A stretch of DNA of 64,000 nt, from NCBI GenBank assembly GCA_950097015.1, contig CATNEN010000038.1:23064001-23128000 (forward strand), in the 5' to 3' direction. The stretch is from Macrostomum hystrix (taxonomy: Eukaryota > Animalia > Platyhelminthes). Positions 26,418-64,000 of the stretch are shown here, in pieces. A program made the translations under genes and the position numbers. How positions within the stretch are numbered: position 1 is the stretch's first letter; each line of letters begins with the position of its first letter. Under the pieces are notes generated by a model. It worked only from the letters and a program-made list of their open reading frames with translations. It had not been told where the DNA came from and searched no databases.

Positions 26418-26449
<32 letters not shown>

Positions 26450-41326: not shown

Positions 41327-41370
41327 CTAAGAGTCCGGCTTGGCGCGCTTCCTGCGCTGCCCATTAGCTG

Positions 41371-41408
<38 letters not shown>

Positions 41409-42247
41409 CGCTTGATGGCAGCGGCACTGGGGGGCTTCTTTGAAGCAGCCTTCGTTGCCGGCTTCTTTGCCTTCTTCTTGGGCTTTTCTTCTTCCTCCTC
41501 TTCGTCTTCTTCTTCCTCATCGTCTTCCTCCATCTCTTCTTCCTCGATGTCCTCTTCCTCGTCCTCATGGGACTGCTCGTTCTCACCTTCCTCCTCCTCC
41601 TCCTCCTCCTCCTCCGCTTCTTCTTCTTCGTCTTCGTCTTCTCCGCCGCCCATCAGAGGCACAACCCGGTGTACTCGGTGAGTTCCAGTCAGCCACACGG
41701 GTCCGTCCCCTTCGGTTAGCTCAAAGATGCACGAAGACGCTGTGCCATTGGCGAACTGCTGCTGCTGCTGAACACCAGAGTCGCCACCAGTCTCCAGGAC
41801 GAATTCGTGTCCAAGAACCAGGGTTCGCTGCGTAGCGGGATCAACGCAGACGATGGGCGTTCCTCCAGAACTGTACTTTTCTTCTTTTTCCTTTTCCTTC
41901 TCCTCCTGGCGCTGCTGCTGCTTGTCCGCAGCGCCCTGAGTTCGAACTGTGACCAGATGAATGCCCGTAGCCTTGGGCGACAGCACGCAGCCAGTTACGT
42001 GAAGTAGGTGACGCGTGGCACCTTCGTCTTCTTTGTTGTCGTCGTGATCAGCTTCCTTGTTGTCTTTCGCATTCTCGTCGCCATTCTTGGCAGTCGAGTG
42101 CTTCCCTGACTCCGCCGGCCTGTCAGGGTGCCATTCGAAGCGCGGCTGTTCGCGAGTTAGCTGACAGCGCCAAAAGTGCACAGAAACCTGCTCAACTCGC
42201 TGCTCTTGCATGGCCACTAGAGTGCTCAAATTGAATGCCGACGACAT
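41327..42247 (-). CDS. Nucleoplasmin-like histone chaperone (NPL core + acidic tract + basic NLS tail), intronless
   Basis: First ATG at 42247. Core-like segments FWRCQLT...F.W, LHVTGCVL, HLVTV, PIVCV, FELTEGDGPVWLTGTH, then a long E/D tract and KPKKKAKK...RRKRAK. Confidence 0.75.
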
Positions 42248-42379
42248 TTTTAATAGTGCTTCTAACAATTTTGAAATATTCTGTCCGGGTGTTGGACCTG
42301 CAGTGGATGAATAATAGACTGCAATTTATAACTTGTCTTCGCTCATCGATCAATAAAAATATACTTCTCTCCCTGCCTC

Positions 42380-42638: not shown

Positions 42639-43241
42639 TACTCAGCAACAGCTAAACCCCCCCAACTCACGCTGTCACACGGGCACAAAAGTTAAGCAAT
42701 GTCTTTAATTCTAGTCTCAGTATCGTGTGTAGGAACCACGAGCATGCAAAAGTGCTGTGACTCGTCGTGGCATCCTGATCACCAGCTGCTATGCAGAGCT
42801 GCTACAGCAGCAGTTTCTGCCATTTGCTACGACAACCTTTGGCGGCCCGCAGAACTGCATGCTTCAAGACGACAACGCTGCGCCACATCGAGCAGCACAC
42901 GTGCAGCTGCTGAAGGAGCAGCTCGGCATTCGCACATTGAACTGGCCGTCAAAGACTCCAGACATGAACCCCATCGAGCATGTCTGGGACTTTGTAAAGC
43001 GAAGAGTTCAGCAGGATGCCCCACAGAATGCTGAACAGTTGCGACTGGCGGTGCTGAATGCCTGGCAGCAGCTGCCCTAAGAGTTCATCAACCGGCTGGT
43101 GATCAGGATGCCACGACGAGTATCGGCACTTTTGCATGCTCGTGGTTCCTACACACAATACTGAGACTAGAATTAAAGACATTGCTGAACTTTTGTGCCC
43201 GTGTGACAGCGTGAGTTGGGGGGGTTAGCTGTTGCTGAGTA
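42639..43241 (+). mobile_element. Non-autonomous Tc1/mariner derivative (DD34E fragment) with ~150-bp terminal inverted repeats
   Basis: Flanked by TA. TIR tactcagcaacagcta...atcctgatcaccagc matches the inverted copy at ~43092-43241. Internal QDDNAAPH...WPSKTPDMNPIEHVW has 34 residues between D and E. In-frame TAA at 43078, then EFINRLVIRMPRRVSALLHARGSYTQY*. Confidence 0.92.
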
Positions 43242-44679
43242 TACATCGCGTCTAAATTTATCGATTTAATTTATCGAATTCATTTATTGATTTGCATACC
43301 TAAATTTCTTAAATTTCTTTTACAGAAAGAACACAGAACTAATTATTACCTGTCTGATATTTTCAACACTAGTCAAGAAAGTTAAACTAGAGCTTCTTCT
43401 ATAAAGCTATGTAATTTTCCTTGGCAAAGGCATCAACTTACGAGTATAACAAATATTGTGATCTAAAATAATTTTAACTAATTGTATTTTATTTGCGGAA
43501 CAATCGGAGGATACTTTGTGGTCTTCCAATGAAGACCGATTGTTGCACACCTTAATTGTCTATGGCCATGACTTGCTATTGTCTTGCTAAACTGCCTATA
43601 GACTTTTTAGACCATAGACATTTTGAGCTTGCGCCACTGATGTATTGCTGCTGCACTCTCAGACTTAGTCATTGCCGGCCCCAAACAATAGTTACAAAAA
43701 CTACGTCATCGAGATTAGTTTTATAATCGTTAAGCTGTAAGACTATCTGAAATAACAGAGGCTGTCAGACAGAAAGGTTATTTCTTTCATATTTTTATAT
43801 TGTCTAAAAAATAAGCAAAAATGCAAATTCGAAAATGCCCCTGCGATGCTCTATCAATTGTTATCAGACAGTTTTCTCATGAAATTGTATTTGTTTAAAT
43901 TTGTGCTTGTTATCCTTCTTTGTTTGCTATCTTAGCTAGCTGCAATTAAATAAAGTATCGGCGAGACTAGAGCAAGATTAGACAGAGGAGAGGACGAAAA
44001 AATACAATAGCGCATAAGCCTGTCATAAAATGAAGAGCATAGTCTCTAGTCCCTAGATTGTCTGTAGGCTCTTCTTAAAGCCAGACCGAGGCTTCATAGA
44101 ATGTTCTAGATAGACACTAGCGGAGTTTCATTCTCCTTCTAGTTGAGCCTGCAGTGCACTCACAAAAAACTACCTCCTATTTTTTCATGCTCTCTCTAGT
44201 TTTTCTTTTCTTTTTACGTATAAAGTTTCTTCGTAAAGCTATTTATTTACTTCTTACTGACTGGAGAGGAAAGACAGAAAGAATGAGAGCTATAGGTAGA
44301 GATAGATTGAGATAGATTGAGGTTCGAGTAGATGCACAGAATTGATGATCTTTCTATACAGAAAGTTTTAAAAGGGGGTGCAAGGCTATTGCAGCTCGGC
44401 AAGGCACTTGAAAACAACCAGAATATTCCTTCCTTTCTACTTCCAACTATGCTATCAAGGTCGAATTATCATAGTAAATAACAAGTTTGCATTGATTTCT
44501 AGACCAAAACTTTGTTGAATTTGAAAAAAATCCCTTCTGACACAGGTGAGTGAGAGCTTTTTTCTGTGAAAACGGAATTCAATTACAAACGATAGCAATA
44601 TATTCGAAAGATGAAATCAGAGATTAGGATATGACCAGCTAAAATCATAGCAATTTTTTTCTCCTATTCAGCTTCTAGA

Positions 44680-45935
44680 CGTGACAAGAGCAGTAGGAGA
44701 ATATGCGACAAGAATAGTAGGAGAAGACTTGACAAGAATTGTAGGAGAGAACAAGTGACAATAATCGTAGGAGAGAAGTGACAAGAATCGTAGGAGAAGA
44801 CATGACAAGAATCGTAGGAGAAGACATGACAAGAACCGTAGGAGAAGACATGACAAGAACCGTAGGAGAAGACATGACAAGAATCGTAGGAGAAGACTTG
44901 ACAAGAATCGTAGGAGAAGACATGACAAGAATCGTAGGAGAAGACATAACAAGAATCGTAGGAGAAGACTTGACAAGAATCGTAGGAGAAGACATAACAA
45001 GAACCGTAGGAGAAGACATAACAAGAATCGTAGGAGAAGACATGACAAGAATCGTAGGAGAGAACTTACAAGAATCGTAGGAGAGAGGTGACAAGAATCG
45101 TAGGAGAGAAGTGACAAGAATCGTAGGAGAGAAGTGACAAGAATCGTAGGAGAAGACGATAAAAGAATCGTAGGAGAAGACATAACAAGAATCGTAGGAG
45201 AAGACATGACAAGAATCGTAGGAGAAGACGATAAAAGAATCGTAGGAGAGAAGTGACAAGAATCGTAGGAGAAGACATGACAAGAATCGTAGGAGAAGAC
45301 ATGACAAGAACCGTAGGAGAAGACATAACAAGAACCGTAGGAGAAGACATAACAAGAATCGTAGGAGAAGACATGACAAGAATCGTAGGAGAGAACTTAC
45401 AAGAATCGTAGGAGAGAGGTGACAAGAATCGTAGGAGAGAAGTGACAAGAATCGTAGGAGAAGACATGACAAGAATCGTAGGAGAAGACATGACAAGAAT
45501 CGTAGGAGAAGACGATAAAAGAATCGTAGGAGAGAAGTGACAAGAATCGTAGGAGAAGACATGACAAGAATCGTAGGAGAAGACATGACAAGAACCGTAG
45601 GAGAAGACATAACAAGAACCGTAGGAGAAGACATAACAAGAATCGTAGGAGAAGACATGACAAGAATCGTAGGAGAGAGGTGACAAGAATCGTAGGAGAG
45701 AAGTGACAAGAATCGTAGGAGAGAAGTGACAAGAATCGTAGGAGAAGACGATAAAAGAATCGTAGGAGAAGACATAACAAGAATCGTAGGAGAAGACATG
45801 ACAAGAATCGTAGGAGAGAAGTGACAAGAACCGTAGGAGAAGCCGATAAAAGAATCGTAGGAGAAGCCGATAAAAGAATCGTAGGAGAAGCCGATAAAAG
45901 AATCGTAGGAGAAGACGATAAAAGAATCGTAGGAA
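44680..45935. repeat. 23/24-bp minisatellite (gacaagaatcgtaggagaagacat)n
   Basis: Direct array downstream of a strong donor cag|gtgagt at 44545/44546, so probably within an intron of the plakin gene. Confidence 0.95.
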
Positions 45936-46051
45936 AAGTCGGAAAAGACTCAAAATCGCAGCACAAAGATATTGTCACAGAATTTACTCTTTCGCGTTGC
46001 TATGAGTCTCGTGCGTTTCCAATTCGCGCAAGGCTCTGTAACGCACCCGAC

Positions 46052-49000
46052 ATGCTGGCGTCTAAAAAGCCGACGCCGCTGCCCGCTGCGGAGAGAGAAG
46101 CGGAAGACTGGCTGTCCGCGAACTCAGCAGCCGTGGCCAACCCTCAACTAGGCTGCAGCCAGCAGGCGCTGCTGCGTCAGGAGATTGACCAGGAGAAGCT
46201 TTTGAACGAGATTGACAAATTGAACTCCCGTCTAACGGTTTCAATCGACGCTGCTGCAGCCGCAGAACTTACCGACAAGCTTCAACGGGCCAGGAATGAA
46301 GTTTCAATTAACCGGGATGCTGTCGCTTACCTGCGCGAGATCGCTGGCCTCGAGAATGTCCTGTCCGAGTCATGCCGTCGGGCTGCCAACCAGGCCATTG
46401 CTCTGTCGCAGCGGCAGGCCGCAGACTTTGGCGGAAACAGCGGCAGGGTGAGAGGACTGGGTTATTTTTCAGTTATTTTTTTACAGTAGGTGGGTTTATC
46501 ACACTTTATAATAAGTCTGACACATAAAAACGTATTTCGAAAAATCTAAACATCTAAACCAGCTCATCAGCAGCGAGGTCTCCCAGACCTGGGAGTGGAT
46601 CACCCGGCTGGGCGAGCTGACCCAGCTGCATCTTAAAAACTCCGCCGACTATCACTCCTTCTATCACGACGCGAACGAGTTGGACGGATTGTTAAACGCA
46701 CGTAAATTGAGCAATGCGCAGGTCCTAAGCTCGATTCCTTCATCGACTGGTCAACTGAGCGCCATGCAGCGAATGAACACCGTATTGAGCGTAAGTTAAA
46801 TATTGTGCAATTGAAATATGAACGAGACCTTAATAATGATTTTTATAACTGCAGGAGAGCTGCGGGCAATGGCACATCATTCAGTGACACTAGACTCGCA
46901 GCCAGCGAGGAGGCAATTCTACCCGTTTCGCTGACTCCTGAGCACACACGCACACAGATACTGTACGCAGGCATACGCTCACACAGGTGTGTACATCTGC
47001 CCTGACTTTCTCATCGTCAGGCAGTGTTCACTCTCACTGTGCCTTGGAGGTTGGCCCTTAAGGGCGTAAATTGCACGACAAGCCCCCAAGCCTTCTCTCC
47101 GCGGCTGCGCCCCAAATGTATGTGGCCTCGCCGCGGAGTCGAGCTGAGGGACCTTGGTGCGAGTGTTAAACGCGTTAACCGCTCTGCCACTCACCCCCGA
47201 AAGAGACCTTAGATTTGCTAGCTCGCAATTCCTCGACTTTTCCAGGACAACTTCTCCAACTTTCTAATGCTGTGGCAGCGGGCTGATCAGCTTGTGACGC
47301 GCAGTCATCGAGTTGTTCCGGTGTACCGTCGGAATCGACCACTGGACGCACCGCATCCCGGACGGAACATCTTCCGGTTCGATGATGGCGAGGCAAGTTC
47401 ACTGCAGATTGTGATAACGATTGTGATCCATTGACTATTTGAAGACAGTGGTTAGAGCTGCAGACTCTTTGACCGAGAGATCTTGAGTTCAAATGTCAAC
47501 TTGGTAGAGAACTTAAATCGACAATCGATCAATTTATCAATCAATATTGAATCTCTCCAGCCAAACAATTTGTTGTGAAGAAAGAAAGTCCATTAAAAAT
47601 TGCATATTTTTATTGGTTCGCCAAACATAAGCCTCGTATTTGTTTCCACAGAACACACTGCTAGACTCGGAGGAGGTTACTGTGCTGGATAATACGCACC
47701 CGTTCACCTGGAAGGTGCGAAAAGCCGATGGAACAGTTGTCGAAGCCCCGAGCATCTGCATTTGGCTGCCGCCACCAGACACGGAGGCTGTGGAAGTTGC
47801 CATCGTGTAAGCATTGCTGACTGGCCATTGTACTTGTATGTTCTTGAATCTGTAGCATGCCCCAGATTTTTTGGTGGATATGATACGAAATGATCGACTT
47901 AACTCGATGGTCGGGGTTCAATTCTTGACTCCACTGGAAATAATATGCATTGAACTGGATTGCTTCAGTTCACCCAGCTGTTAAATACTCGTAGATCGCA
48001 AAAAGACTAAAGATTTCAGGAACTATCTTTTTGTTGCAGCATACGCAAGAAGTTGCTAAACACGTGGGCAGCGCTGCTAAGTAGGCTGAGAACCTGGCTC
48101 GTAAATTGCTTCACCGTCTATCTGAGGGGCCTTGGAAACGGACCAGTTGTGAGTTGTTTTTACTTGTGAATGCGAAATTTCTAGTATGAGAAGATTCTAG
48201 TAGGAGAAGACGTGACAATAGTTCTACAAATGTAATGGCACGGAGACCCAAATCATATTTTTAAAAAATCTTATTTTAGTTCGTAGCAGCCAGCCTACTG
48301 CCGAAATTCCGCGACTTTCTCAACCATCTGGAACGGGCCGCCGGCGATGTTCTGGCTGACGTCGAAGGACGCCAACAGCTGCTGAGCGCACTGCGAGTTG
48401 TGCTTAACAATCTGATGCCGTGTGGTGAGAGTGATAATAACTATATTATTAGCAGGAGGGCTGCCGGCAATGCCACATCAATTGGTAACACTAGACCCGC
48501 AGCCAGTGAGGAGGCAATTCTGCCCTTTGACTTACTTTGACTTAGCTGCAGGGTGGTCCATGGACGCAGCGGGGAGGCGAGGATCACCCATACCGCTAAC
48601 CCCTGTAGGCCCGCAGACAGGCAAGGGCGCGGGGCCGGTCAGGGTGGTCCGCCGGTCCGTCCTGCAGCGTTGTCTTCCGTAGGGAAGAACGTGGCTCGTC
48701 TAATTGCCCGGAGGAACTGGACGAGCCGTGGAATGCTGTCGGGCTGGCAGATCTCGTCCATAGGCGGGTTGGGCCCGAGGTAGCGCAGCCGGTCTCTGTT
48801 AAAGAAAGGCCAGTGACACACAAAGTGCTCAGCATCTTTGTTGTCGTACTCACAGAATGGGCAGAGTTCACTCTCAAGGTCGCCCCGGCAGAAACAGTGC
48901 CTAGCGAGGTAGCCGTGGCCCGTGAGGGTCATGGCGAGGGCGCGGATATCCTTCCGGTTTTGGTTCAAGAGGATGTTCCTAAGCCTGCGGGACGGGCGCG

Positions 49001-52000
49001 GAACTGCGGCACGGGATTGCCGCCAGTTCTGGGTGCCCGCCCATCTGTCCCTGTGGAGGGACTCAGCCCAGTCATCAATAAGGCGATTGATGACCTTGAT
49101 GGGGATCGGGACCAGGGGAGCAGGGCCCAGGAGAGAGCCAGAGCCACCTTGCTTGGCAAGGGTATCCGCTAGCTCGTTCCCTGGGAAGCCCGCATGCCCT
49201 GGGAGCGATTCTGCCAATTCTGCTGGCTCCTGAGCAGGCACGCACACAGATAGCAGGTACAGACACAGGTGTGTACATCTGCCCCGACTGTACAATGTCA
49301 TGCAGTGCACAATGTCAACTGTGAATTGGAGGTTGACCCACTAAGGCGCAAATTGCACGAAAAGCTCCCAAGCCTTCTCTCCACGACAGAGCCTCAAATG
49401 AATGTCGGTGCGGAATCTAGCCCAGCGACCTTGGGCGAGAGGCAAATGCCTTAACCGCTCTGTTACTCACCTTCAGGTGCGAGTGATACACTGATATTAT
49501 GAATCCATTGTTGCAGCGCTATTATTTGGCACCAGTTTTTAGTATGTATCTGTAGTACATGACAATAGTATTGGTATTTGGCATTGATATTCAGAGTTTT
49601 ATTTGGCATCGGTACTTGCTATAGGAATCAATATTGATATTGTTATTTCTTTTAAGATTTTACTTCTCATATGTACTTTCAGACTCTGACGACCAAGCTG
49701 CTGTAGGGGAGAGCGAGGTGCTCCGGATGAAGTCGCTGCTGCAGAAGTTAATGGACCACCTGCGACACTGGAAGCACCTTAACGACCAGATGGATTATGC
49801 CAAGCAAGATCAGCGTGCTCTGCTGCAGGAGACAACTCAAGTGCTCTCTGCTTTCAGTGTTCTCAGGTAGCGTGATAAGGTCTCTATGAAAGATCAATAA
49901 TTTCTATGAAATCAGTACAAGACGATCCAAAGACGATGAAAATTTGTTAAATGTTAGTTTTGTCTATGTTTATAGAGGCCTTGAATTAAATTGATAATTT
50001 ATTGAATTTTCAGCCGAGTGCAGAATGAGAGCCTGTCGCAGCTGGAAGACCTCCAGGCCAGGATTGACGAGTGGCGCTTTCACAGTCCGATGTCACGCGC
50101 CTCGTCGGTTAGACGGAGTGAAATTCTGGTGAGGTCATCAAAAATAACTGAATACGAACTGTCAGTTTTTTAATCTTTTTTGCTCGGAAATTTCAAACAG
50201 GATGCCGTTGCGGCTACAATCAGCCAGGTTGGCACTCGCAGCAGGACTGGTCGAGACAGTGCAGTCAGCGAGCGACTACTAAATCAGGAGCCGCCACGCG
50301 CCGCCTCGGGACCGCAGTCGCCGCCGGTGATTGACAACTGGATGTCGGAGATTTTACAGCATTCTAAGCTAAGCCAGCAATGGCCCGGCGAAATCGGAAA
50401 GTCGACACACCGAGGCACCCAAACTGACGCAAAAACAGGCGAACGTGAGGGTGAAGAATGGCCTAAGTATGTTGACGCCTTTTCTGCGTACGGAAGGCTT
50501 GAAAGTGCTAGCTTAGAAAAGACGGAGCTTTCGCGACTTGTCTACAACTACGTGCAAGAGCACGAGGAAGAGGTGAAGGCGTTCTTACACAAGAACTGTC
50601 CTAGTCCGATAGTCAACGCGGCCTCCACCTTCGGGACGGTAGCTGGACAACCGATAGACATAATGGACAGTATGGCCCATATCGAAGAAGCGATTGAATC
50701 TCGCCAAAGTATCCGAGTAAAAACTTCTCAACTGCAAACAGTCCAGACAGACAATGCTGAGAGTCAGACTACACCGGTGCCCGTGGCAACAACGGAAGTG
50801 AACTTCCTCCGAACCTTTGAAGACGCTTGCACTGTCAGTCGTCAGGCTGTGACTGACGCAAAAGTCAGTTGCAAGCCTATTGAAACACAGCTGAAAAAGG
50901 CCTCTACAAGAGACACAGTTAGTGTCTTCTGTGTTGATTTGTGTAATAACGAGACAGCTACAGTTAACGCTTCAATTAGCAAAGAGACACAGACAACAGA
51001 AGACTTGCAGGAAAAAAATGTGACGTCCTTAGCAAAAGAAATGGGAGCACACAGCCAGGTTGAACATCAAAGCGATGGAGTACAAGCCAGGGGTCAGCAG
51101 CCACTGTCCCACAGCATAGTCGCTTCAGAACCACAACAGGTGGCAGAAAAGAGCTCATTTTTCGAAGATGAACCAGAAAAAAGTAAAACTTCAAAGAAAC
51201 AACAAACTGGAAAACACGAATTGGCACCAACAACAGAGAAGGTTAACTCATGTGTATGCTATAATCAAGATTTGCGCGTAACAGACTGCATGACCTTCAT
51301 CGACTCGTCATGCCAAGAGAGCCAAGTACAAAAAAGCCAGGTGTTCATTGAATCAGGCGTCAGTTGCAAAATAGAAATGCTTAATAGCTTAGTAGGCATT
51401 ACAGCTCATCCAAAAATATCCCACTGCGAAACCTTCCTAGAGACATCGTACGACGAGGCCAAAGTACAGGCGCTACAGACAGTCAGCGAGATGGGCTTCA
51501 GCGAGCAGACGTTCCAGGCCGACGGGTCCATCTGCTTCCGACTAGAGCCCGAGCTAGCAGTGTGCGGTAGCTTCCTCGAGACAACGTACGATGAGGCCAA
51601 AGTACAGGCGCAACAGGCAGTCAGCGAGATGGGCTTCAGCGAGCAGACGTTCCAGGCCGACGGGTCCATCTGCTTCCGACTAGAGCCCGAGCTTGCAGCT
51701 TGTCAGAGCTTCCAGGAGACGTCGATCGCCGAAGCTAAAGTACAGGCGCAACAGGCAGTCAGCGATATGGGCTTCAGCGAGCAGACGTTCCAGGCCGACG
51801 GGTCCATCTGCTTCCGTCTAGAACTCGAGCTTGCAGCTTGTCAGAGCTTCCAGGAGACGTCGATCGCCGAAGCAAAAGTACAGGCGCAACAGACAGTCAG
51901 CGAGATGGGCTTCAGCGAGCAGACGTTCCAGGCCGACGGGTCCATCTGCTTCCGACTAGAGCCCGAGCTTGCAGTGTGCGGTAGCTCCCTCGAGACAACG

Positions 52001-55000
52001 TACGATGAGGCCAAAGTACAGGCGCAACAGGCAGTCAGCGAGATGGGCTTCAGCGAGCAGACGTTCCAGGCCGACGGGTCCATCTGCTTCCGTCTAGAAC
52101 TCGAGCTTGCAGCTTGTCAGAGCTTCCAGGAGACGTCGATCGCCGAAGCAAAAGTACAGGCGCAACAGACAGTCAGCGAGATGGGCTTCAGCGAGCAGAC
52201 GTTCCAGGCCGACGGGTCCATCTGCTTCCGACTAGAGCCCGAGCTTGCAGTGTGCGGTAGCTCCCTCGAGACAACGTACGATGAGGCCAAAGTACAGGCG
52301 CAACAGGCAGTCAGCGAGATGGGCTTCAGCGAGCAGACGTTCCAGGCCGACGGGTCCATCTGCTTCCGACTAGAGCCCGAGCTAGCAGTCTGCGGTAGCT
52401 TCCTCGAGACAACGTACGACGAGGCCAAAGTACAGGCGCAACAGGCAGTCAGCGAGATGGGCTTCAGCGAGCAGACGTTCCAGGCCGACGGGTCCATCTG
52501 CTTCCGACTAGATCCCGAGCTTGCAGTGTGCGGTAGCTCCCTCGAGACAACGTACGACGAGGCCAAAGTACAGGCGCAACAGGCAGTCAGCGAGATGGGC
52601 TTCAGCGAGCAGACGTTCCAGGCAGACGGGTCCATCTGCTTCCGTCTAGAACTCGAGCTTGCAGCTTGTCAGAGCTTCCAGGAGACGTCGATCGCCGAAG
52701 CCAAAGTACAGGCGCAACAGACAGTCAGCGAGATGGGCTTCAGCGAGCAGACGTTCCAGGCCGACGGGTCCATCTGCTTCCGACTAGAGCCCGAGCTTGC
52801 AGTGTGCGGTAGCTCCCTCGAGACAACGTACGATGAGGCCAAAGTACAGGCGCAACAGGCAGTCAGCGAGATGGGCTTCAGCGAGCAGACGTTCCAGGCC
52901 GACGGGTCCATCTGCTTCCGTCTAGAACTCGAGCTTGCAGCTTGTCAGAGCTTCCAGGAGACGTCGATCGCCGAAGCCAAAGTACAGGCGCAACAGACAG
53001 TCAGCGAGATGGGCTTCAGCGAGCAGACGTTCCAGGCCGACGGGTCCATCTGCTTTCGACTAGAGCCCGAGCTAGCAGTCTGCGGTAGCTTCCTCGAGAC
53101 AACGTACGACGAGGCCAAAGTACAGGCGCAACAGGCAGTCAGCGAGATGGGCTTCAGCGAGCAGACGTTCCAGGCCGACGGGTCCATCTGCTTCCGACTA
53201 GAGCCCGAGCTAGCAGTCTGCGGTAGCTTCCTCGAGACAACGTACGACGAGGCCAAAGTACAGGCGCAACAGACAGTCAGCGAGATGGGCTTCAGCGAGC
53301 AGACGTTCCAGGCCGACGGGTCCATCTGCTTCCGACTAGAGCCCGAGCTAGCAGTCTGCGGTAGCTTCCTCGAGACAACGTACGATGAGGCCAAAGTACA
53401 GGCGCAACAGGCAGTCAGCGAGATGGGCTTCAGCGAGCAGACGTTCCAGGCCGACGGGTCCATCTGCTTCCGACTAGAGCCCGAGCTAGCAGTCTGCGGT
53501 AGCTTCCTCGAGACAACGTACGACGAGGCCAAAGTACAGGCGCAACAGGCAGTCAGCGAGATGGGCTTCAGCGAGCAGACGTTCCAGGCCGACGGGTCCA
53601 TCTGCTTCCGACTAGAGCCCGAGCTTGCAGTGTGCGGTAGCTTCCTCGAGACAACGTACGACGAGGCCAAAGTACAGGCGCAACAGACAGTCAGCGAGAT
53701 GGGCTTCAGCGAGCAGACGTTCCAGGCCGACGGGTCCATCTGCTTCCGACTAGAGCCCGAGCTTGCAGTGTGCGGTAGCTCCCTCGAGACAACGTACGAT
53801 GAGGCCAAAGTACAGGCGCAACAGACAGTCAGCGAGATGGGCTTCAGCGAGCAGACGTTCCAGGCCGACGGGTCCATCTGCTTCCGTCTAGAACTCGAGC
53901 TTGCAGCTTGTCAGAGCTTCCAGGAGACGTCGATCGCCGAAGCCAAAGTACAGGCGCAACAGACAGTCAGCGAGATGGGCTTCAGCGAGCAGACGTTCCA
54001 GGCCGACGGGTCCATCTGCTTCCGTCTAGAACTCGAGCTTGCAGCTTGTCAGAGCTTCCAGGAGACGTCGATCGCTGAAGCCAAAGTACAGGCGCAACAG
54101 ACAGTCAGCGAGATGGGCTTCAGCGAGCAGACGTTCCAGGCCGACGGGTCCATCTGCTTTCGACTAGAGCCCGAGCTAGCAGTCTGCGGTAGCTTCCTCG
54201 AGACAACGTACGACGAGGCCAAAGTACAGGCGCAACAGGCAGTCAGCGAGATGGGCTTCAGCGAGCAGACGTTCCAGGCCGACGGGTCCATCTGCTTCCG
54301 ACTAGAGCCCGAGCTTGCAGTGTGCGGTAGCTCCCTCGAGACAACGTACGATGAGGCCAAAGTAAAGGCGCAACAGGCAGTCAGCGAGATGGGCTTCAGC
54401 GAGCAGACGTTCCAGGCCGACGGGTCCATCTGCTTCCGTCTAGAACTCGAGCTTGCAGCTTGTCAGAGCTTCCAGGAGACGTCGATCGCCGAAGCCAAAG
54501 TACAGGCGCAACAGACAGTCAGCGAGATGGGCTTCAGCGAGCAGACGTTCCAGGCCGACGGGTCCATCTGCTTCCGTCTAGAACTCGAGCTTGCAGCTTG
54601 TCAGAGCTTCCAGGAGACGTCGATCGCCGAAGCCAAAGTACAGGCGCAACAGACAGTCAGCGAGATGGGCTTCAGCGAGCAGACGTTCCAGGCCGACGGG
54701 TCCATCTGCTTCCGACTAGAGCCCGAGCTTGCAGTGTGCGGTAGCTCCCTCGAGACAACGTACGACGAGGCCAAAGTACAGGCGCAACAGGCAGTCAGCG
54801 AGATGGGCTTCAGCGAGCAGACGTTCCAGGCCGACGGGTCCATCTGCTTCCGACTAGAGCCCGAGCTTGCAGTGTGCGGTAGCTCCCTCGAGACAACGTA
54901 CGATGAGGCCAAAGTAAAGGCGCAACAGGCAGTCAGCGAGATGGGCTTCAGCGAGCAGACGTTCCAGGCCGACGGGTCCATCTGCTTCCGTCTAGAACTC

Positions 55001-58000
55001 GAGCTTGCAGCTTGTCAGAGCTTCCAGGAGACGTCGATCGCCGAAGCCAAAGTACAGGCGCAACAGACAGTCAGCGAGATGGGCTTCAGCGAGCAGACGT
55101 TCCAGGCCGACGGGTCCATCTGCTTCCGACTAGAGCCCGAGCTTGCAGTGTGCGGTAGCTCCCTCGAGACAACGTACGATGAGGCCAAAGTACAGGCGCA
55201 ACAGGCAGTCAGCGAGATGGGCTTCAGCGAGCAGACGTTCCAGGCCGACGGGTCCATCTGCTTCCGTCTAGAACTCGAGCTTGCAGCTTGTCAGAGCTTC
55301 CAGGAGACGTCGATCGCCGAAGCAAAAGTACAGGCGCAACAGACAGTCAGCGAAATGGGCTTCAGCGAGCAGACGTTCCAGGCCGACGGGTCCATCTGCT
55401 TCCGTCTAGAACTCGAGCTTGCAGCTTGTCAGAGCTTCCAGGAGACGTCGATCGCCGAAGCAAAAGTACAGGCGCAACAGACAGTCAGCGAGATGGGCTT
55501 CAGCGAGCAGACGTTCCAGGCCGACGGGTCCATCTGCTTCCGTCTAGAACTCGAGCTTGCAGCTTGTCAGAGCTTCCAGGAGACGTCGATCGCCGAAGCC
55601 AAAGTACAGGCGCAACAGACAGTCAGCGAGATGGGCTTCAGCGAGCAGACGTTCCAGGCCGACGGGTCCATCTGCTTCCGACTAGAGCCCGAGCTAGCAG
55701 TCTGCGGTAGCTTCCTCGAGACAACGTACGACGAGGCCAAAGTACAGGCGCAACAGGCAGTCAGCGAGATGGGCTTCAGCGAGCAGACGTTCCAGGCCGA
55801 CGGGTCCATCTGCTTCCGACTAGAGCCCGAGCTTGCAGTGTGCGGTAGCTCCCTCGAGACAACGTACGATGAGGCCAAAGTACAGGCGCAACAGGCAGTC
55901 AGCGAGATGGGCTTCAGCGAGCAGACGTTCCAGGCCGACGGGTCCATCTGCTTCCGTCTAGAACTCGAGCTTGCAGCTTGTCAGAGCTTCCAGGAGACGT
56001 CGATCGCCGAAGCAAAAGTACAGGCGCAACAGACAGTCAGCGAGATGGGCTTCAGCGAGCAGACGTTCCAGGCCGACGGGTCCATCTGCTTCCGACTAGA
56101 GCCCGAGCTTGCAGTGTGCGGTAGCTCCCTCGAGACAACGTACGATGAGGCCAAAGTACAGGCGCAACAGGCAGTCAGCGAGATGGGCTTCAGCGAGCAG
56201 ACGTTCCAGGCCGACGGGTCCATCTGCTTCCGTCTAGAACTCGAGCTTGCAGCTTGTCAGAGCTTCCAGGAGACGTCGATCGCCGAAGCCAAAGTACAGG
56301 CGCAACAGACAGTCAGCGAGATGGGCTTCAGCGAGCAGACGTTCCAGGCCGACGGGTCCATCTGCTTCCGACTAGAGCCCGAGCTAGCAGTCTGCGGTAG
56401 CTTCCTCGAGACAACGTACGACGAGGCCAAAGTACAGGCGCAACAGGCAGTCAGCGAGATGGGCTTCAGCGAGCAGACGTTCCAGGCCGACGGGTCCATC
56501 TGCTTCCGACTAGAGCCCGAGCTTGCAGTGTGCGGTAGCTCCCTCGAGACAACGTACGATGAGGCCAAAGTACAGGCGCAACAGGCAGTCAGCGAGATGG
56601 GCTTCAGCGAGCAGACGTTCCAGGCCGACGGGTCCATCTGCTTCCGTCTAGAACTCGAGCTTGCAGCTTGTCAGAGCTTCCAGGAGACGTCGATCGCCGA
56701 AGCCAAAGTACAGGCGCAACAGACAGTCAGCGAGATGGGCTTCAGCGAGCAGACGTTCCAGGCCGACGGGTCCATCTGCTTCCGTACTAGAACTCGAGCT
56801 TGCAGCTTGTGCAGGAGCTTCCAGGAGACGTACGATCGCCGAAGCCAAAGTACAGGCGCAACAGACAGTCAGCGAGATGGGCTTCAGCGAGCAGACGTTC
56901 CAGGCCGACGGGTCCATCTGCTTCCGTCTAGAACTCGAGCTTGCAGCTTGTCAGAGCTTCCAGGAGACGTCGATCGCCGAAGCCAAAGTACAGGCGCAAC
57001 AGACAGTCAGCGAGATGGGCTTCAGCGAGCAGACGTTCCAGGCCGACGGGTCCATCTGCTTCCGTCTAGAACTCGAGCTTGCAGCTTGTCAGAGCTTCCA
57101 GGAGACGTCGATCGCCGAAGCAAAAGTACAGGCGCAACAGACAGTCAGCGAGATGGGCTTCAGCGAGCAGACGTTCCAGGCCGACGGGTCCATCTGCTTC
57201 CGTCTAGAACTCGAGCTTGCAGCTTGTCAGAGCTTCCAGGAGACGTCGATCGCCGAAGCAAAGTACAGGCGCAACAGACAGTCAGCGAGATGGGCTTCAG
57301 CGAGCAGACGTTCCAGGCCGACGGGTCCATCTGCTTCCGACTAGAGCCCGAGCTAGCAGTCTGCGGTAGCTTCCCTCGAGACAACGTACGACTGAGGCCA
57401 AAGTACAGGCGCAACAGGCAGTCAGCGAGATGGGCTTCAGCGAGCAGACGTTCCAGGCCGACGGGTCCATCTGCTTCCGACTAGAGCCCGAGCTTGCAGT
57501 GTGCGGTAGCTTCCCTCGAGACAACGTACGATCGAGGCCAAAGTACAGGCGCAACAGGCAGTCAGCGAGATGGGCTTCAGCGAGCAGACGTTCCAGGCCG
57601 ACGGGTCCATCTGCTTCCGTCTAGAACTCGAGCTTGCAGCTTGTCAGAGCTTCCAGGAGACGTCGATCGCCGAAGCCAAAGTACAGGCGCAACAGACAGT
57701 CAGCGAGATGGGCTTCAGCGAGCAGACGTTCCAGGCCGACGGGTCCATCTGCTTCCGACTAGAGCCCGAGCTTGCAGTGTGCGGTAGCTCCCTCGAGACA
57801 ACGTACGACGAGGCCAAAGTACAGGCGCAACAGGCAGTCAGCGAGATGGGCTTCAGCGAGCAGACGTTCCAGGCCGACGGGTCCATCTGCTTCCGACTAG
57901 AGCCCGAGCTTGCAGTGTGCGGTAGCTCCCTCGAGACAACGTACGATGAGGCCAAAGTACAGGCGCAACAGGCAGTCAGCGAGATGGGCTTCAGCGAGCA

Positions 58001-61000
58001 GACGTTCCAGGCCGACGGGTCCATCTGCTTCCGTCTAGAACTCGAGCTTGCAGCTTGTCAGAGCTTCCAGGAGACGTCGATCGCCGAAGCCAAAGTACAG
58101 GCGCAACAGACAGTCAGCGAGATGGGCTTCAGCGAGCAGACGTTCCAGGCCGACGGGTCCATCTGCTTCCGTCTAGAACTCGAGCTTGCAGCTTGTCAGA
58201 GCTTCCAGGAGACGTCGATCGCCGAAGCCAAAGTACAGGCGCAACAGACAGTCAGCGAGATGGGCTTCAGCGAGCAGACGTTCCAGGCCGACGGGTCCAT
58301 CTGCTTCCGTCTAGAACTCGAGCTTGCAGCTTGTCAGAGCTTCCAGGAGACGTCGATCGCCGAAGCAAAAGTACAGGCGCAACAGACAGTCAGCGAGATG
58401 GGCTTCAGCGAGCAGACGTTCCAGGCCGACGGGTCCATCTGCTTCCGTCTAGAACTCGAGCTTGCAGCTTGTCAGAGCTTCCAGGAGACGTCGATCGCCG
58501 AAGCCAAAGTACAGGCGCAACAGACAGTCAGCGAGATGGGCTTCAGCGAGCAGACGTTCCAGGCCGACGGGTCCATCTGCTTCCGACTAGAGCCCGAGCT
58601 AGCAGTCTGCGGTAGCTCCCTCGAGACAACGTACGATGAGGCCAAAGTACAGGCGCAACAGACAGTCAGCGAGATGGGCTTCAGCGAGCAGACGTTCCAG
58701 GCCGACGGGTCCATCTGCTTCCGACTAGAGCCCGAGCTTGCAGTGTGCGGTAGCTCCCTCGAGACAACGTACGATGAGGCCAAAGTACAGGCGCAACAGG
58801 CAGTCAGCGAGATGGGCTTCAGCGAGCAGACGTTCCAGGCCGACGGGTCCATCTGCTTCCGTCTAGAACTCGAGCTTGCAGCTTGTCAGAGCTTCCAGGA
58901 GACGTCGATCGCCGAAGCAAAAGTACAGGCGCAACAGACAGTCAGCGAGATGGGCTTCAGCGAGCAGACGTTCCAGGCCGACGGGTCCATCTGCTTCCGA
59001 CTAGAGCCCGAGCTAGCAGTCTGCGGTAGCTTCCTCGAGACAACGTACGACGAGGCCAAAGTACAGGCGCAACAGGCAGTCAGCGAGATGGGCTTCAGCG
59101 AGCAGACGTTCCAGGCCGACGGGTCCATCTGCTTCCGTCTAGAACTCGAGCTTGCAGCTTGTCAGAGCTTCCAGGAGACGTCGATCGCCGAAGCAAAAGT
59201 ACAGGCGCAACAGACAGTCAGCGAGATGGGCTTCAGCGAGCAGACGTTCCAGGCCGACGGGTCCATCTGCTTCCGTCTAGAACTCGAGCTTGCAGCTTGT
59301 CAGAGCTTCCAGGAGACGTCGATCGCCGAAGCCATAGTACAGGCGCAACAGACAGTCAGCGAGATGGGCTTCAGCGAGCAGACGTTCCAGGCCGACGGGT
59401 CCATCTGCTTCCGACTAGAGCCCGAGCTAGCAGTCTGCGGTAGCTTCCTCGAGACAACGTACGACGAGGCCAAAGTACAGGCGCAACAGGCAGTCAGCGA
59501 GATGGGCTTCAGCGAGCAGACGTTCCAGGCCGACGGGTCCATCTGCTTCCGACTAGAGCCCGAGCTTGCAGTGTGCGGTAGCTCCCTCGAGACAACGTAC
59601 GATGAGGCCAAAGTACAGGCGCAACAGGCAGTCAGCGAGATGGGCTTCAGCGAGCAGACGTTCCAGGCCGACGGGTCCATCTGCTTCCGTCTAGAACTCG
59701 AGCTTGCAGCTTGTCAGAGCTTCCAGGAGACGTCGAACGCCGAAGCTAAAGTACAGGCGCAACAGACAGTCAGCGAGATGGGCTTCAGCGAGCAGACGTT
59801 CCAGGCCGACGGGTCCATCTGCTTCCGACTAGAGCCCGAGCTAGCAGTCTGCGGTAGCTCCCTCGAGACAACGTACGATGAGGCCAAAGTAAAGGCGCAA
59901 CAGGCAGTCAGCGAGATGGGCTTCAGCGAGCAGACGTTCCAGGCCGACGGGTCCATCTGCTTCCGTCTAGAACTCGAGCTTGCAGCTTGTCAGAGCTTCC
60001 AGGAGACGTCGATCGCCGAAGCCAAAGTACAGGCGCAACAGACAGTCAGCGAGATGGGCTTCAGCGAGCAGACGTTCCAGGCCGACGGGTCCATCTGCTT
60101 CCGACTAGAACTCGAGCTTGCAGCTTGTCAGAGCTTCCAGGAGACGTCGATCGCCGAAGCCAAAGTACAGGCGCAACAGACAGTCAGCGAGATGGGCTGC
60201 AGCGAGCAGAAATTCCAGAGTGACGGTTTTGTCGTATGTCGAGTTCAACAGTATTGTTCTAGTGTCTGTATTTCACCTGAGCCGACGATTGTGTGTTGCA
60301 GTAGCTCTTTGGAGATGGAATACGTTCGATGTTGTATTCGTGCTCAGAATGCCGTTGTTGAATCTTACATTTTTATTAAGCCAGAAGTGGCCTTTGCGTG
60401 TGTTAGTGTTGGACCTAAGTCTAGTGTTTCATTCTGCCATAGCTTTTCAGAAACATCTTTAGAGGATTCGAGAGTTCGGGCAAGGCAGGCAGTCGCTTAT
60501 TTTGGGTACAGTTTTGGTTCGCAGCCGCTGGTATCCTTCACTGCGTCGTATTTTGAGCGGCAAGTCGTTCAGAGCAATGCACTGTGCCATACAGTTGCTC
60601 TTTGCAATTCGAATATCGAACACAAGCAAGCGATCGCGAATTCGGGGGTTGTTATTGGAAAGGAGGCGGTGGAATGCTGCATAAGGAGTGAGTGGCACGC
60701 CAGTGTAATCGAAGGAGGCACACATTTTGAGCATCGGTATGAGACCAGTGGTGCACGGTTTTCCGCACCTATTGTTCAGAACTCAGCCGTTCAAGTTGAG
60801 AAGCAAACCGCTGAATCACTCGTCGTTTCTGTTCGGAGTAGTGTTGTTCTCTCGTCCGCCTGTTTCGAGATCGAAGTATCTGAGTCCAATGCATCATTCA
60901 ACCGCAGAGCAAAGCAAGCAGATCGGGGGTCGCTTTGGCGTTCATCGATTGGAATTTCGAGTGGAAGTTTCTGGGCCGGACCGCCGGCTCTGGAAGTTCA

Positions 61001-61352
61001 GTCAACTCATGCATTCATCGAGGAGACTAAAGAGCATCGAGCTGCTATCCTGACTTTTGACGCGTCAGTGGTTCGGAACGAGACAGGCTTTATTGCTAGC
61101 AGCGGCAGCTGCTTGGAAATCCAAGTGGCTCTGACTGGTGTTCGAGTCAGGCCGGAAGCTGTCTCGGCGCCGCACGCTCGCCTGCAAGCCAGCGTTACTA
61201 GTCGCAGTCAGGATTCGACCGACAATGTCAGAGGTGTGGCTGGGCGTCTGCTTGCTCCGCCGTCCGCCGTGCTCACCACTAGTGTAACTCCGCGCGGCTC
61301 GGAGGTAGATCTGCTCAGCGAATATGGCACAGTGTTCGACAGGGACGACTAA
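46052..61352 (+). CDS. Giant plakin-domain protein (spectrin-like repeats + plakin SH3) with a C-terminal array of ~63 x 46-aa repeats; start uncertain
   Basis: Exons ~46052(or 45981)-46447, 46563-46790, 47246-47392 (GC donor), 47652-47806, 48040-48148, 48280-48424, 49683-49866, 50014-50128, 50201-61352; phases consistent. Plakin-like TWEWITRLGELTQLHLKNSADYHSFYHDANE and RSHRVVPVYRRNRPL...EVTVLDNTHPFTWKVRKADGTVVEAPSICIWLPPPDTEAVE. Indels at 56785-57535 break the last exon (likely assembly artefacts). Confidence 0.8.
46850..47197 (-). mobile_element. SINE family 2, full length, tRNA-derived head (plakin intron)
   Basis: Reverse complement starts ggggtgagtggcagagcggttaacgcg...ggtccctcagctcgactcc (A and B boxes). 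Homologous copies at 48451-49470 and 62425-62692. Confidence 0.8.
48451..49470 (-). mobile_element. SINE family 2 copy interrupted by a LINE insertion
   Basis: 48451-48524 and 49208-49470 align to the two halves of the 46850-47197 copy. Confidence 0.8.
48525..49207 (-). mobile_element. 5'-truncated non-LTR retrotransposon (RNase H C-terminus + Cys/His knuckle + 3'UTR)
   Basis: Encodes LPGHAGFPGNELADTLAKQG (RNase H) ... LTGHGYLARH...CPFC..DAEHFVCH. The 3' end has (taagtcaaag)x2. Flanked by direct repeat attctgcc (48517-48524 and 49208-49215). Confidence 0.85.
51422..60215 (+). repeat. 138-bp (46-aa) coding tandem repeat, ~63 copies, two main variants
   Basis: A: EPELAVCGS[F/S]LETTYDEAKVQAQQ[A/T]VSEMGFSEQTFQADGSICFRL; B: ELELAACQSFQETSIAEAKVQAQQTVSEMGFSEQTFQADGSICFRL. 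Confidence 0.97.
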
Positions 61353-61680: not shown

Positions 61681-62424
61681 GCTATAGTTTCTTTTTCTAA
61701 TTATTAAATTTGATTCTCAAGATGGGCACAGTTTAAATTTTTTTATATTTTCTTCCCGCTGATTATGTTCGCGTTTTTCTTAGAATAAGAAATTACTTAG
61801 ATAAAAAATCTGGTTTAGTACATTATTTTTACTAACATTCTGCTAACTTAGTCTCATAAAACTCTTTTTTGTAATAATTCTTAATTAAAAACGTACAAGT
61901 CTCATGATGTCTTGTTTTACTGTTGGATTTGTATTTCTTCAAATCCATTAGATAATATTGTTAGTATTTATTCCAAAGTGACGTATATGAGTAGTGAGAC
62001 AGTTTAGACATTTTTAATTCCATTTAGCAGTTCTTTTTCTACCATTTAGTTTAGTGTCTAAATAACCTCTGCTTGTTTGTGTTCTAACTTGTTTGCCTAT
62101 CAAAAGCGAGTTTAATTTTACTCAAATACCAAAGACGACGCTAAACTACCATACCATTTAAATTAAAATTCATAGATACTATACCAAAGAAATGCATCAA
62201 ATATGTAGACTTTTTCATTTTATAATATTCTATCTATCTCTGGTATTACTACGAGTAGTATGTTGCGATGCGATTGCATTTCCACCTGTTCGTGCTCTTA
62301 CAGCTGTGATCTCAGTGACAGACAATCTTTGTAATCTCCGTGCTGTGATAATAGTACATGTAGGACTATATAAGCTAGCTCGTATTTTTGTGGACGCCAA
62401 CTATGAAACAACGTAAAGGTCCTC

Positions 62425-62692
62425 GTAACGCATTTGCCTCTCGCACCAAGGTCCCCGAACCCGAGTCCGCGGCGAGGTCACTTTCGTTTGGGGCGCCGCC
62501 GCGGAGAGAAGGCTTTGGGGGCTTGTCGTGCAATTTACGCGCTTGAGGAGCGACCTCAAAGACACAGTGATAGTGTACACTGCCTGACGACGAGAAAGTC
62601 AGCGCAGATGTATACACCTGGGTGTATGTGTGTGTGCTCAGGAGTCAGCGAAATGGGCAGAATTCCTCGCTGTTTGCGGGTCTATTGTCACC
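62425..62692 (+). mobile_element. SINE family 2 copy
   Basis: ctcgcaccaaggtccc...ccgcggcgagg...ggagagaaggctt...gtcgtgcaatttacg...gctcaggagtcagcgaaa matches the reverse complement of 46850-47197. Confidence 0.8.
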
Positions 62693-63829: not shown

Positions 63830-64000
63830 GCGCCACTAAGGATTAAGAGGGCGCCACCATGGATTTAGAGGGCGCCACCATGGATTTAGAGGGCGCCACC
63901 ATGGATTTAGAGGGCGCCACCATGGATTTAGAGGGCGCCATAGCGGATTTAAAGGACGCCACCAAGGATAATGAGGACGCCACCATGGATAATGAGGACG
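63830..64000. repeat. 21-bp minisatellite (gggcgccaccatggatttaga)n running to the window edge
   Basis: Direct tandem units. Confidence 0.85.

Follow-up and report, generated by a model that had tools for sequence, protein, structure and literature searches.

Plakins link cell junctions to the cytoskeleton, and their binding targets are set by their tails, which are built either of plakin repeats or of a spectrin rod with a GAR domain. In the plakin domain of desmoplakin and plectin (PDB 3r6n and 3pe0), an SH3_10-type SH3 domain sits amid three-helix spectrin-like repeats, within SR5; desmoplakin has no N-terminal actin-binding CH pair. The gene described here, gene A (44363-61352, + strand), lies in a window of the Macrostomum hystrix genome, by which we mean the whole stretch of 64,000 nt that was analysed, and it resembles desmoplakin in both respects. 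However, its head is only 493 aa long, about four repeats, and lacks the SR7-SR9 part of a full plakin domain (about 900-1,000 aa); it has no plakin-repeat domain and probably no dimerising coiled-coil rod.

Other described plakins share single features with it. Periplakin and envoplakin are likewise compact and lack an actin-binding domain (ABD), and their heads target membranes and junctions. They carry a heptad coiled-coil rod, to which envoplakin adds one plakin-repeat domain, whereas gene A has a 63-unit acidic tandem repeat in that place. Many tandem modules, some near-identical, are also packed into one very large exon in epiplakin and in Drosophila shot, with its giant plakin-repeat exon (PMC2173965). 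There the modules belong to the canonical plakin-repeat type (Pfam Plectin), in contrast to the 46-aa unit of gene A, which has no match in Pfam, the PDB or the ESM Atlas. Taken together, the observations below suggest that gene A is probably a real, transcribed, single-copy plakin-head gene of about 4,200 aa with a giant repeat tail, a member of a flatworm plakin subfamily whose product would be a cytolinker, located in the cytoplasm and carrying a modular tail specific to its lineage.

Exon chain and plakin-type head

The exon chain was read from spliced transcript contigs, which come from four runs of one study: a 5′UTR exon is followed by eight small coding exons, and a terminal exon closes the chain. 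Exon ends were taken from these contigs and then refined to canonical splice sites. The nine coding exons are joined at GT/GC-AG borders, and coordinate arithmetic shows that the coding phases of all exons are compatible. The features, all in window coordinates, are as follows.

About 44363-44545, + strand: 5′UTR exon; its 5′ limit is the reach of the contigs; donor AG/GTGAGT
44677-45938, no strand: non-coding 24-bp minisatellite, 53 copies, in intron 1 (TRF); removed by splicing in all transcript contigs
46033-46447, + strand: coding exon 1, from contigs; ATG at 46052 (MLASKKPTPLP...); first spectrin-like helices
46563-46790, + strand: coding exon 2, from contigs; spectrin-like helices (…NSADYHSFYHDANELD…)
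47246-47392, + strand: coding exon 3, from contigs; end of a helix and N-terminal half of the SH3; a GC-AG intron comes next
47652-47806, + strand: coding exon 4; C-terminal half of the plakin-type SH3 (…DNTHPFTWKV…APSICIWLPPPD…); Pfam SH3_10
48040-48148, + strand: coding exon 5, from contigs; post-SH3 helix
48280-48424, + strand: coding exon 6, from contigs; spectrin-like helix
49683-49866, + strand: coding exon 7, from contigs; spectrin-like helix
50014-50128, + strand: coding exon 8, from contigs; final head helix
50201-61352, + strand: terminal exon (e9), about 11.2 kb; linker, repeats and C-terminus
50201-51432, + strand: non-repeat linker, about 410 aa; gapless coverage by transcript contigs, no Pfam match
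51433-60218, + strand: tandem array of 63 units of 138 bp (46 aa); one open frame (for its breaks, see the next line)
56735-57569, + strand: four adjacent indel-bearing units, located by unit spacing; frame broken in the assembly
60219-61352, + strand: degenerate repeats and C-terminal region, about 380 aa; in the frame of the last 19 repeats, TAA at 61350-61352

The initial annotation of this DNA had proposed, from the letters alone, that eight small exons splice in frame and that the eighth joins the repeat-bearing exon through a 50128-50201 junction; the contigs confirm both proposals, and the junction is present in 4/4 runs. Because gene A is single copy at the DNA level in this assembly, the spliced contigs are not derived from a retrocopy, and that origin was ruled out. 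The loose 5′ ends of the contigs (128-181 nt) have a unique match at 44514-44543, in the 5′UTR exon, which also contains one short uORF ATG, at 44449. Transcript depth is alike over head and linker. Because RNA coverage follows the exons as far as about 51504 and ends before most of the repeat array and the 3′ end, we infer the expression of these parts from the open reading frame alone.

The SH3 that the annotation had recognised as plakin-type holds up well. SH3_10 (PF17902) is found in exon 4 alone above the Pfam cut-off (E 8e-9; 35.9 bits against 22.8), and the best PDB sequence matches are plectin and desmoplakin, exon 4 aligning to 3pe0 and 3r6n. The M. lignano orthologue P0001 matches the full profile (positions 1-65, E 3.4e-11), with profile positions 1-24 mapping to its counterpart of exon 3.

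The structure of the head was modelled on P0006, the M. lignano orthologue of a gene A paralogue, rather than on the joined gene A protein; the gene A exons are 21-55% identical to it. In the AlphaFold model, pLDDT is above 85 over residues 10-480 and helical repeats flank the SH3; the helices stop near residue 483, with low-confidence sequence beyond. The top Foldseek match is SR3-SR6 of desmoplakin 3r6n (E 8e-12, 460 columns), plectin 3pe0 also being matched, and the model superposes on SR3-SR6 of both proteins with 15-18% identity in the structural alignment. On this model, the gene A SH3 is predicted to lie inserted within a spectrin-repeat tandem (the SR3-SR6 ‘long arm’).

When all exons, linker, repeats and C-terminus were scanned with Pfam, SH3_10 was the sole result, and no exon matched the features (N-terminal CH-CH, spectrin-repeat rod, EF-hands, GAR) of spectraplakins (MACF1, dystonin, Shot, VAB-10B). 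No CH domain, signal peptide or transmembrane segment is evident, as had been noted at the outset. Upstream of gene A lie unrelated minus-strand genes and a mariner transposase fragment. Hidden upstream exons encoding CH domains were considered and rejected: the transcript begins at the 5′UTR exon, and upstream of it stand those genes and that fragment.

The repeat-bearing terminal exon and its reading frame

The count of 63 units of 138 bp agrees with the roughly 63 acidic 46-aa units, each with two Cys, that had first been described. There are 29 units of type A (…LELELAACQSFQETSIAEAKVQAQQTVSE) and 30 of type B (…LEPELAVCGS[SF]LETTYDEAKVQAQQAVSE), the other 4 being those with indels. Each 46-aa unit contains 2 Cys and 1 Lys and is acidic, with a net charge of -5/-6. 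The composition of the repeats (Gln 12.9%, Glu 13%, F 8%, Cys 4.3%) is, in its F and Cys contents, unlike that of a disordered chain. In the linker, which is 32% identical to P0001 over 88%, local BLAST identified a block at about 50402-50716 (…VYNYVQEHEEEVKAFLHKNCPSPIVN…) that is common to paralogues B and C and to the M. lignano orthologues.

The repeat had been called unrecognised and the classical plakin tails absent, and the database searches are in accord with both statements. A nine-unit sample gave only summed sub-threshold noise in Pfam, with 0 stretches passing on their own; the repeat alignment, run as a profile against the PDB, matched nothing (E 0.31); and the ESM Atlas held no usable match to the repeats or the linker. 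A search with 10 repeat units, in which candidates were 253-805 aa long, found no homologous protein at E ≤ 0.001. Pfam has no match in the linker or the C-terminus, and plakin-repeat domains (Pfam Plectin, PF00681) are absent from the linker, the nine-unit sample and the C-terminus. Plectin repeats are likewise absent from gene A and the family proteins scanned (P0003, P0004, P0007, P0009, P0010, P0011, P0032 and P0063). In the downstream sequence examined, no coding ORF follows the stop codon of gene A, and plectin-repeat exons in that position were rejected for want of any coding signal.

AlphaFold prediction for four units from a 10-row alignment reached a pLDDT of 41.7. The model shows a 22-residue helix and a hairpin in each unit, the helix not being continuous from unit to unit; because of the low pLDDT, this helix-hairpin unit is a weak prediction. 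The residues kept across species and paralogues (EMG, ADG, [FY][KR]xE and CxS/TFxE) map in this low-confidence model to the helix cap, the hairpin turn and the strands.

The terminal exon had been presented as one clean ORF, and this did not survive inspection: in the present assembly it consists of two ORFs in different frames (50180-57484 and 57570-61352), split by indels at 56735-57569. The four units concerned measure 142, 137, 140 and 140 nt (+4, -1, +2 and +2; net +7 nt). On either side a single frame is open, over 38 units before the breaks and over 19 units plus the C-terminus after them. Judged from the sequence, the four frame-breaking indels are most likely consensus errors of the assembly. 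Without them, the ORF would code for about 4,207 aa. Were the breaks real, gene A would be a recent pseudogene, or translation would end at the stop codon at 57482-57484 and yield a shortened protein of about 2,900 aa with the head and 38 repeats. The assembly as it stands, with its four indel-bearing units and their net +7 nt, agrees with such a reading, as does the ORF of the neighbouring gene B, which is likewise split, by a 1-nt insertion. We nevertheless consider real breaks unlikely. The 3.8 kb downstream, comprising 19 perfect units and 380 aa of unique C-terminus, has stayed open in one frame, and gene A is transcribed at similar depth on head and linker. Furthermore, the unit alignment shows that 7/8 indels retain both variants at sites that differ between the unit types, the pattern expected of misaligned reads in a consensus. 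With consensus errors as the favoured explanation, gene A serves as a warning that coding repeat arrays can carry such errors even in chromosome-level assemblies.

A flatworm family of plakin heads with giant tails

Gene A had appeared to be a singular oddity. It is not: the chromosome carries at least three such genes, orthologues occur in M. lignano, and relatives occur in flukes and tapeworms. Gene B is a tandem paralogue directly downstream of gene A, and gene C lies 1.9 Mb away as an intact single ORF of 6,657 aa. Both share the build of gene A, and the paralogues carry 24- and 57-aa relatives of its unit. Fourteen SH3_10 loci are present in this 220-Mb genome, of which at least three, all on one chromosome, have giant repeat exons; such exons were examined at three of the 14.

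Gene A belongs to an undescribed flatworm gene family. Its members have a head of about 490 aa that begins with a Met about 25 aa ahead of W-L-x-x-N…G-C-x-Q-Q-A-L, an SH3 at about residues 225-290, and one giant exon that encodes both linker and tandem repeats. Among the members are genes A, B and C and M. lignano PAA49746.1, PAA76340.1 and PAA91320.1. Compared one exon at a time, gene A and the M. lignano database proteins align at identical borders. Exon 1 aligns to the N-termini of P0003, P0004 and P0006 of that species, with the Met start at the same place; exon 2 is 65-76% identical to P0003 and P0004, and exon 3 is 85% identical to P0002. The A/B tandem arrangement also recurs on one M. 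lignano contig.

The orthologues in M. lignano are filed in databases as "hypothetical / Desmoplakin SH3 domain-containing protein". One of them, PAA49746.1 (BOX15_Mlig017584g1; UniProt A0A267DKR5, ‘Desmoplakin SH3 domain-containing protein’), is 60-85% identical to gene A in exons 3-6. The two share their exon borders, the linker block and the same tandem neighbour, and the 46/57-aa repeats of PAA49746.1 are of the same repeat family. It differs in being an uncharacterised partial model of 1,377 aa. By hand count its units are about 41% identical to those of gene A, and they have one conserved Cys rather than two.

Relatives in Fasciola, Taenia, Dibothriocephalus and Sparganum combine the same head with other repeat tails. 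The nearest relatives outside the flatworms are short SH3_10 plus plectin-repeat proteins of annelids (Owenia, Paralvinella) and one nemertean (Tubulanus), a type also found in M. lignano (P0012-P0028). In these proteins the head follows the family plan, and about residues 225-310 form the SH3; unlike gene A, they are 750-1,000 aa long and end in canonical plectin repeats. The lineage-specific tail that had been postulated is upheld, the unrecognised repeat being restricted to a lineage. The literature on plakin or plectin in Macrostomum, other flatworms, planarians, Schistosoma or tapeworms, or on M. lignano gene ids, yielded no relevant paper.

Possible roles of the tail

We favour the following picture of the protein. 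The 493-aa head would comprise about four spectrin-like repeats with an inserted SH3, equivalent to SR3-SR6 of desmoplakin and plectin; by analogy with plakin domains, it may dock the protein, probably cytoplasmic, to a membrane or junction complex. The 11.2-kb terminal exon would supply the 410-aa linker, the 63 near-identical acidic units and the degenerate C-terminus. The tail may be a chain of small helix-plus-β-hairpin modules that provides the cell cortex with a spacer, spring or scaffold of great length and negative charge. In the flatworm subfamily, the coiled-coil rod, the plakin-repeat tail or the spectrin/GAR tail would have been swapped for fast-evolving tandem repeats, which concerted evolution would keep alike inside each gene.

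The initial annotation had suggested a ruler, an elastic element or a cross-linkable cortex protein, for example in epidermis, muscle attachment or adhesive-organ cells; these are candidate roles. Two other functions of the tail were weighed. Envoplakin, periplakin and involucrin are transglutaminase substrates, and the tail could similarly be a substrate for covalent cross-linking, either of Gln to Lys by transglutaminase or of Cys to Cys, within an insoluble intracellular layer comparable to the one that proteins with involucrin-type Gln/Glu-rich repeats, as partners of periplakin and envoplakin, form in the cornified envelope. The richness in Gln (12.9%), Glu (13%) and Cys (4.3%), the two Cys and one Lys per unit, and the ABD-less type of head, as in periplakin, envoplakin and desmoplakin, would all fit. 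However, composition is the sole argument, the M. lignano orthologue and gene B have kept just one of the two Cys, and neither an enzyme link nor tissue data were found; we therefore rate cross-linking as very unlikely.

Alternatively, the tail could be a multivalent docking array in which the unit motif (Q-x-V-S-E-M-G…E-Q…A-D-G) recruits a small partner in many copies, for example the dynein light chain LC8. A short core is indeed kept between species far better than the rest of the unit (about 41% unit identity with M. lignano, hand count), and TQIG/xQTD-type motifs occur in the tails of the fluke and tapeworm relatives. Yet a scan of 3,438 aa encoded in frame by the terminal exon of gene A found 2 TQT and 10 loose [TIVSC]Q[TVI] anchors, so the anchors do not occur one per unit, and no TQT-type anchor recurs from unit to unit. 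The sole Cys-Gln candidate, ACQSF, reads CGS in the 30 type-B units, and the conserved Gly and Asp-Gly sites would suit structural turns in the predicted fold. An LC8 array was rejected, the motif being absent, and docking arrays in general appear improbable.

The preferred reading, a cytolinker with a modular tail, has a bolder extension that we consider doubtful. Together with its relatives of 24 and 57 aa, the 46-aa unit could be a new, autonomously folding helix-plus-hairpin module that replaced the plakin rod and tail and gave rise to phylum-specific giant cortical proteins; these would be the long-sought protein basis of the flatworm epidermal terminal web or tegument skeleton, a layer whose thickness or elasticity would depend on the number of repeats. 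If the family does form the cortical skeleton of the epidermis or tegument, it would bear on the mechanical strength of soft-bodied animals that have no cuticle and, if so, also on the tegument of parasitic flukes and tapeworms. Across the whole phylum, a junction-docking head seems to have been kept while the tail was exchanged, several times over, for giant fast-evolving tandem repeats. Gene A itself is a clean case of concerted evolution in a coding minisatellite.

Transcript and frame of gene A

The window occupies C38:23064001-23128000 of the 220-Mb, 42-contig M. hystrix assembly, and its protein matches are best to M. lignano proteins (60-85% identity). Transcript evidence for gene A, the + strand gene at about 44363-61352 that combines a plakin-type head with a giant repeat tail, was drawn from four small public RNA runs of one study, in which about half of the sampled words of 45940-51400 were present. 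The RNA contigs placed on this stretch are devoid of introns.

Features of gene A (cover, block covered by RNA contigs, before the splice-site shift)
44677-45938, 24-bp minisatellite (TRF), intronic
46031-46446, + strand, cover
46562-46790, + strand, cover
47246-47390, + strand, cover
47650-47806, + strand, cover
48040-48148, + strand, cover
48280-48423, + strand, cover
49682-49862, + strand, cover
50010-50127, + strand, cover
50200-51400, then about 104 nt more into the first repeat, + strand, cover
50201-61352, + strand, terminal exon (11,152 nt)
51433-60218, 138-bp array of 63.6 copies (TRF)

At their 5′ ends, the contigs carry an extra 128-181 nt that match uniquely at 44514-44543, which makes the 24-bp minisatellite intronic and the first exon a 5′UTR exon. 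This exon contains one ATG, at 44449, which opens a 10-codon upstream reading frame (MLSRSNYHSK, then stop) before the main start codon at 46052. After shifting to canonical sites, all introns are GT-AG except 47393-47651, the GC-AG intron after exon 3, which interrupts the SH3 domain. Together with the contigs, these borders and the exon phases, all compatible by coordinate arithmetic, confirm the proposed in-frame joining of the small exons (eight, encoding 493 aa) to the terminal exon; the 50128/50201 junction, for which the initial annotation had proposed a cDNA check, was seen in 4/4 runs. A genome search finds gene A as a single copy at the DNA level; the intron-free contigs therefore reflect spliced RNA, and a retrocopy was rejected as their source.

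Transcript cover ends at about 51504, and the repeat array and 3′ end rest on the open frame. The initial description was sound except that it had overlooked breaks in the frame of the terminal exon: the array spans two long + strand ORFs (50180-57484 and 57570-61352) that differ in frame, owing to four units of deviating length. Spacing departs from 138 nt at 56735 (142), 57153 (137), 57290 (140) and 57430 (140), a net gain of 7 nt, and is 138 nt everywhere else. In the unit alignment, seven of eight indels lie at sites that differ between unit types, with both variants retained (for example, cgt-cta and cga-cta becoming cgtacta). Retention of both variants in a consensus is the kind of trace that misaligned reads produce. 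Past the indels, 19 units and 380 unique residues are open in a single frame. Given these two features, the frame breaks are quite likely to be an assembly artefact.

Head and repeat tail

The exons of gene A were searched singly rather than as a joined protein. Exon 4 by itself matches the Pfam domain SH3_10 (E = 8e-9), in agreement with the plakin-type SH3 head first proposed. A search with the linker, the non-repeat start of the terminal exon, retrieved the M. lignano fragment P0001, which starts exactly at exon 3 and agrees in splicing with the gene A model. P0001 matches the entire SH3_10 profile (E = 3.4e-11); among PDB entries, plectin (3pe0) and desmoplakin (3r6n) match it best. The complete head of another M. 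lignano family member, P0006, was modelled by AlphaFold with pLDDT >85 over residues 10-480, with three-helix repeats surrounding the SH3. The top Foldseek hits of this model are desmoplakin SR3-SR6 (3r6n, E = 8e-12 over 460 columns) and plectin SR4-SR5.

Pfam detects no CH domain, as had been noted, and no plectin repeat, spectrin rod or EF/GAR domain in the gene A exons. Minus-strand genes and a mariner fragment lie 5′ of the 5′UTR exon, and no coding sequence was found downstream of the stop codon. The head is therefore a truncated plakin domain that lacks the ABD.

Upstream neighbours of gene A
38775-39983 and 41327-42268, - strand, two ORFs (named by eye only): one syntrophin-like, with a PDZ-like stretch; one nucleoplasmin-like and very acidic, with long stretches of Glu/Asp and of Gln
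42733-43077, Tc1/mariner-type transposase ORF fragment (…DDNAAPHRA…WPSKTPDMNPIEHVWD…), between the upstream gene and the 5′UTR exon, recognised by eye

The predicted array of about 63 units of 46 aa with two Cys each was reproduced: 63 units were counted, with a mean pairwise nucleotide identity of 92%. Types A (29 units) and B (30) and the four indel-bearing units follow one another in no regular order, and every unit contains two Cys and is acidic (net charge -5 or -6). Their composition is E 13, Q 13, A 12, S 10, F 8 and C 4.3%, more hydrophobic than a typical disordered chain would be. As initially reported, the unit is unfamiliar, with no match in Pfam, PDB or Atlas, and none in a 5.8-billion-protein index at the candidate lengths searched (253-805 aa). 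AlphaFold drew each of four units as a 22-residue helix and a β-hairpin, at a pLDDT of 41.7 that is not confident. Residues kept across paralogues and species (C-x-S/T-F-x-E, Q-x-V-S-E-M-G, A-D-G and [FY]-[KR]-x-E) map in this low-confidence model to both ends of the helix (start and cap), to the turn of the hairpin and to the second strand, a placement that hints at a folded module.

From these features we infer how the protein might work. Having no signal peptide or TM segment, it would be cytoplasmic. Plakin domains dock at junction or membrane complexes; the head would attach to such a complex, and the tail, in which small modules would form a long acidic chain, could act as a spacer, spring or scaffold. 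An LC8 array does not fit the tail, which has two TQT in 3,438 aa and loses its sole Cys-Gln candidate in the 30 type-B units. A tail in a cross-linked matrix is a conceivable alternative, to which the composition of the repeat would point.

Paralogues, relatives and likely history

The initial interpretation was reasonable, but the claim that gene A is unique was overstated: it has at least two paralogues, is one of 14 SH3_10 loci in this genome, and has M. lignano orthologues and fluke and tapeworm relatives. Its tandem paralogue, gene B (C38:23129667-23158251), starts about 1.7 kb beyond the window end with its first coding exon at C38:23129667, has its SH3 exon at 23131105 and carries, 5′ of that first coding exon, a minisatellite with a 21-bp unit (window 63829-64000 on to C38:23129370). 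A single inserted T, which turns gaatgcg into gaattgcg, divides its reading frame into ORFs of 3,717 and 2,692 aa. The units of gene B have 46 or 57 aa; the longer form equals the shorter one with 11 aa inserted. Gene C (C38:25056890-25082555, at 25.06 Mb; loci L023, L029, L024 and L030) has a single intact ORF of 6,657 aa, in which 24-aa units (SGCFKESHLSESRAQFKEEVAVTA) are arranged in a higher-order pattern; PAA91320.1 is the orthologue in M. lignano. Genes A, B and C have in common the head and the linker block VYNYIxExxxEVKxYLHxxxPxxIVN. The 14 SH3_10 loci, on contigs C2, C3, C7 (two), C9, C24, C34, C37, C38 (three), C39 (two) and C41, seem numerous for a genome of 220 Mb.

The M. lignano orthologues of genes A and B lie on a single 76-kb contig. 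Units of gene A and M. lignano are about 41% identical (hand count of printed sequences), against 92% nucleotide identity within gene A, a disparity indicative of concerted evolution. More distant members are found in Fasciola, Taenia ('Plectin, partial', 'titin-like') and Dibothriocephalus, in Sparganum (4,221 aa) and in M. lignano itself (up to 4,370 aa). In the members P0003, P0004, P0007, P0009, P0010, P0011, P0032 and P0063, no Pfam domain except SH3_10 passes its cut-off, and the tails are built of other repeats. The nearest non-flatworm relatives, annelid and nemertean proteins of 750-1,000 aa, have a head of the same layout and end in C-terminal plectin repeats, and M. lignano also retains one protein with an SH3_10 head and plectin repeats. 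The likely history starts from a short spiralian plakin with a plectin-repeat tail, which in flatworms gave way to expanding tandem repeats. Gene A represents a plakin variant that databases already contain as uncharacterised proteins; the M. lignano orthologues are named only hypothetical or 'Desmoplakin SH3 domain-containing protein', and a literature search found no paper on gene A or its family.

Repetitive sequence around gene A

Copies of a short interspersed element, with common translated strings such as VCTSALTFSSSGSVH, are abundant and transcribed; in the RNA runs, summed contig depth over the two intronic copies reaches about 9,400, versus about 16 for gene A. Minisatellite arrays are plentiful in the introns and intergenic DNA of this genome.

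Repetitive elements in the window
46855-47220 and 48319-48684, short interspersed element, intronic
62375-62700, short interspersed element, downstream of gene A
24945-26519, 27695-28801, 36187-36840 and 37412-37981, further long minisatellites with spurious multi-frame ORFs
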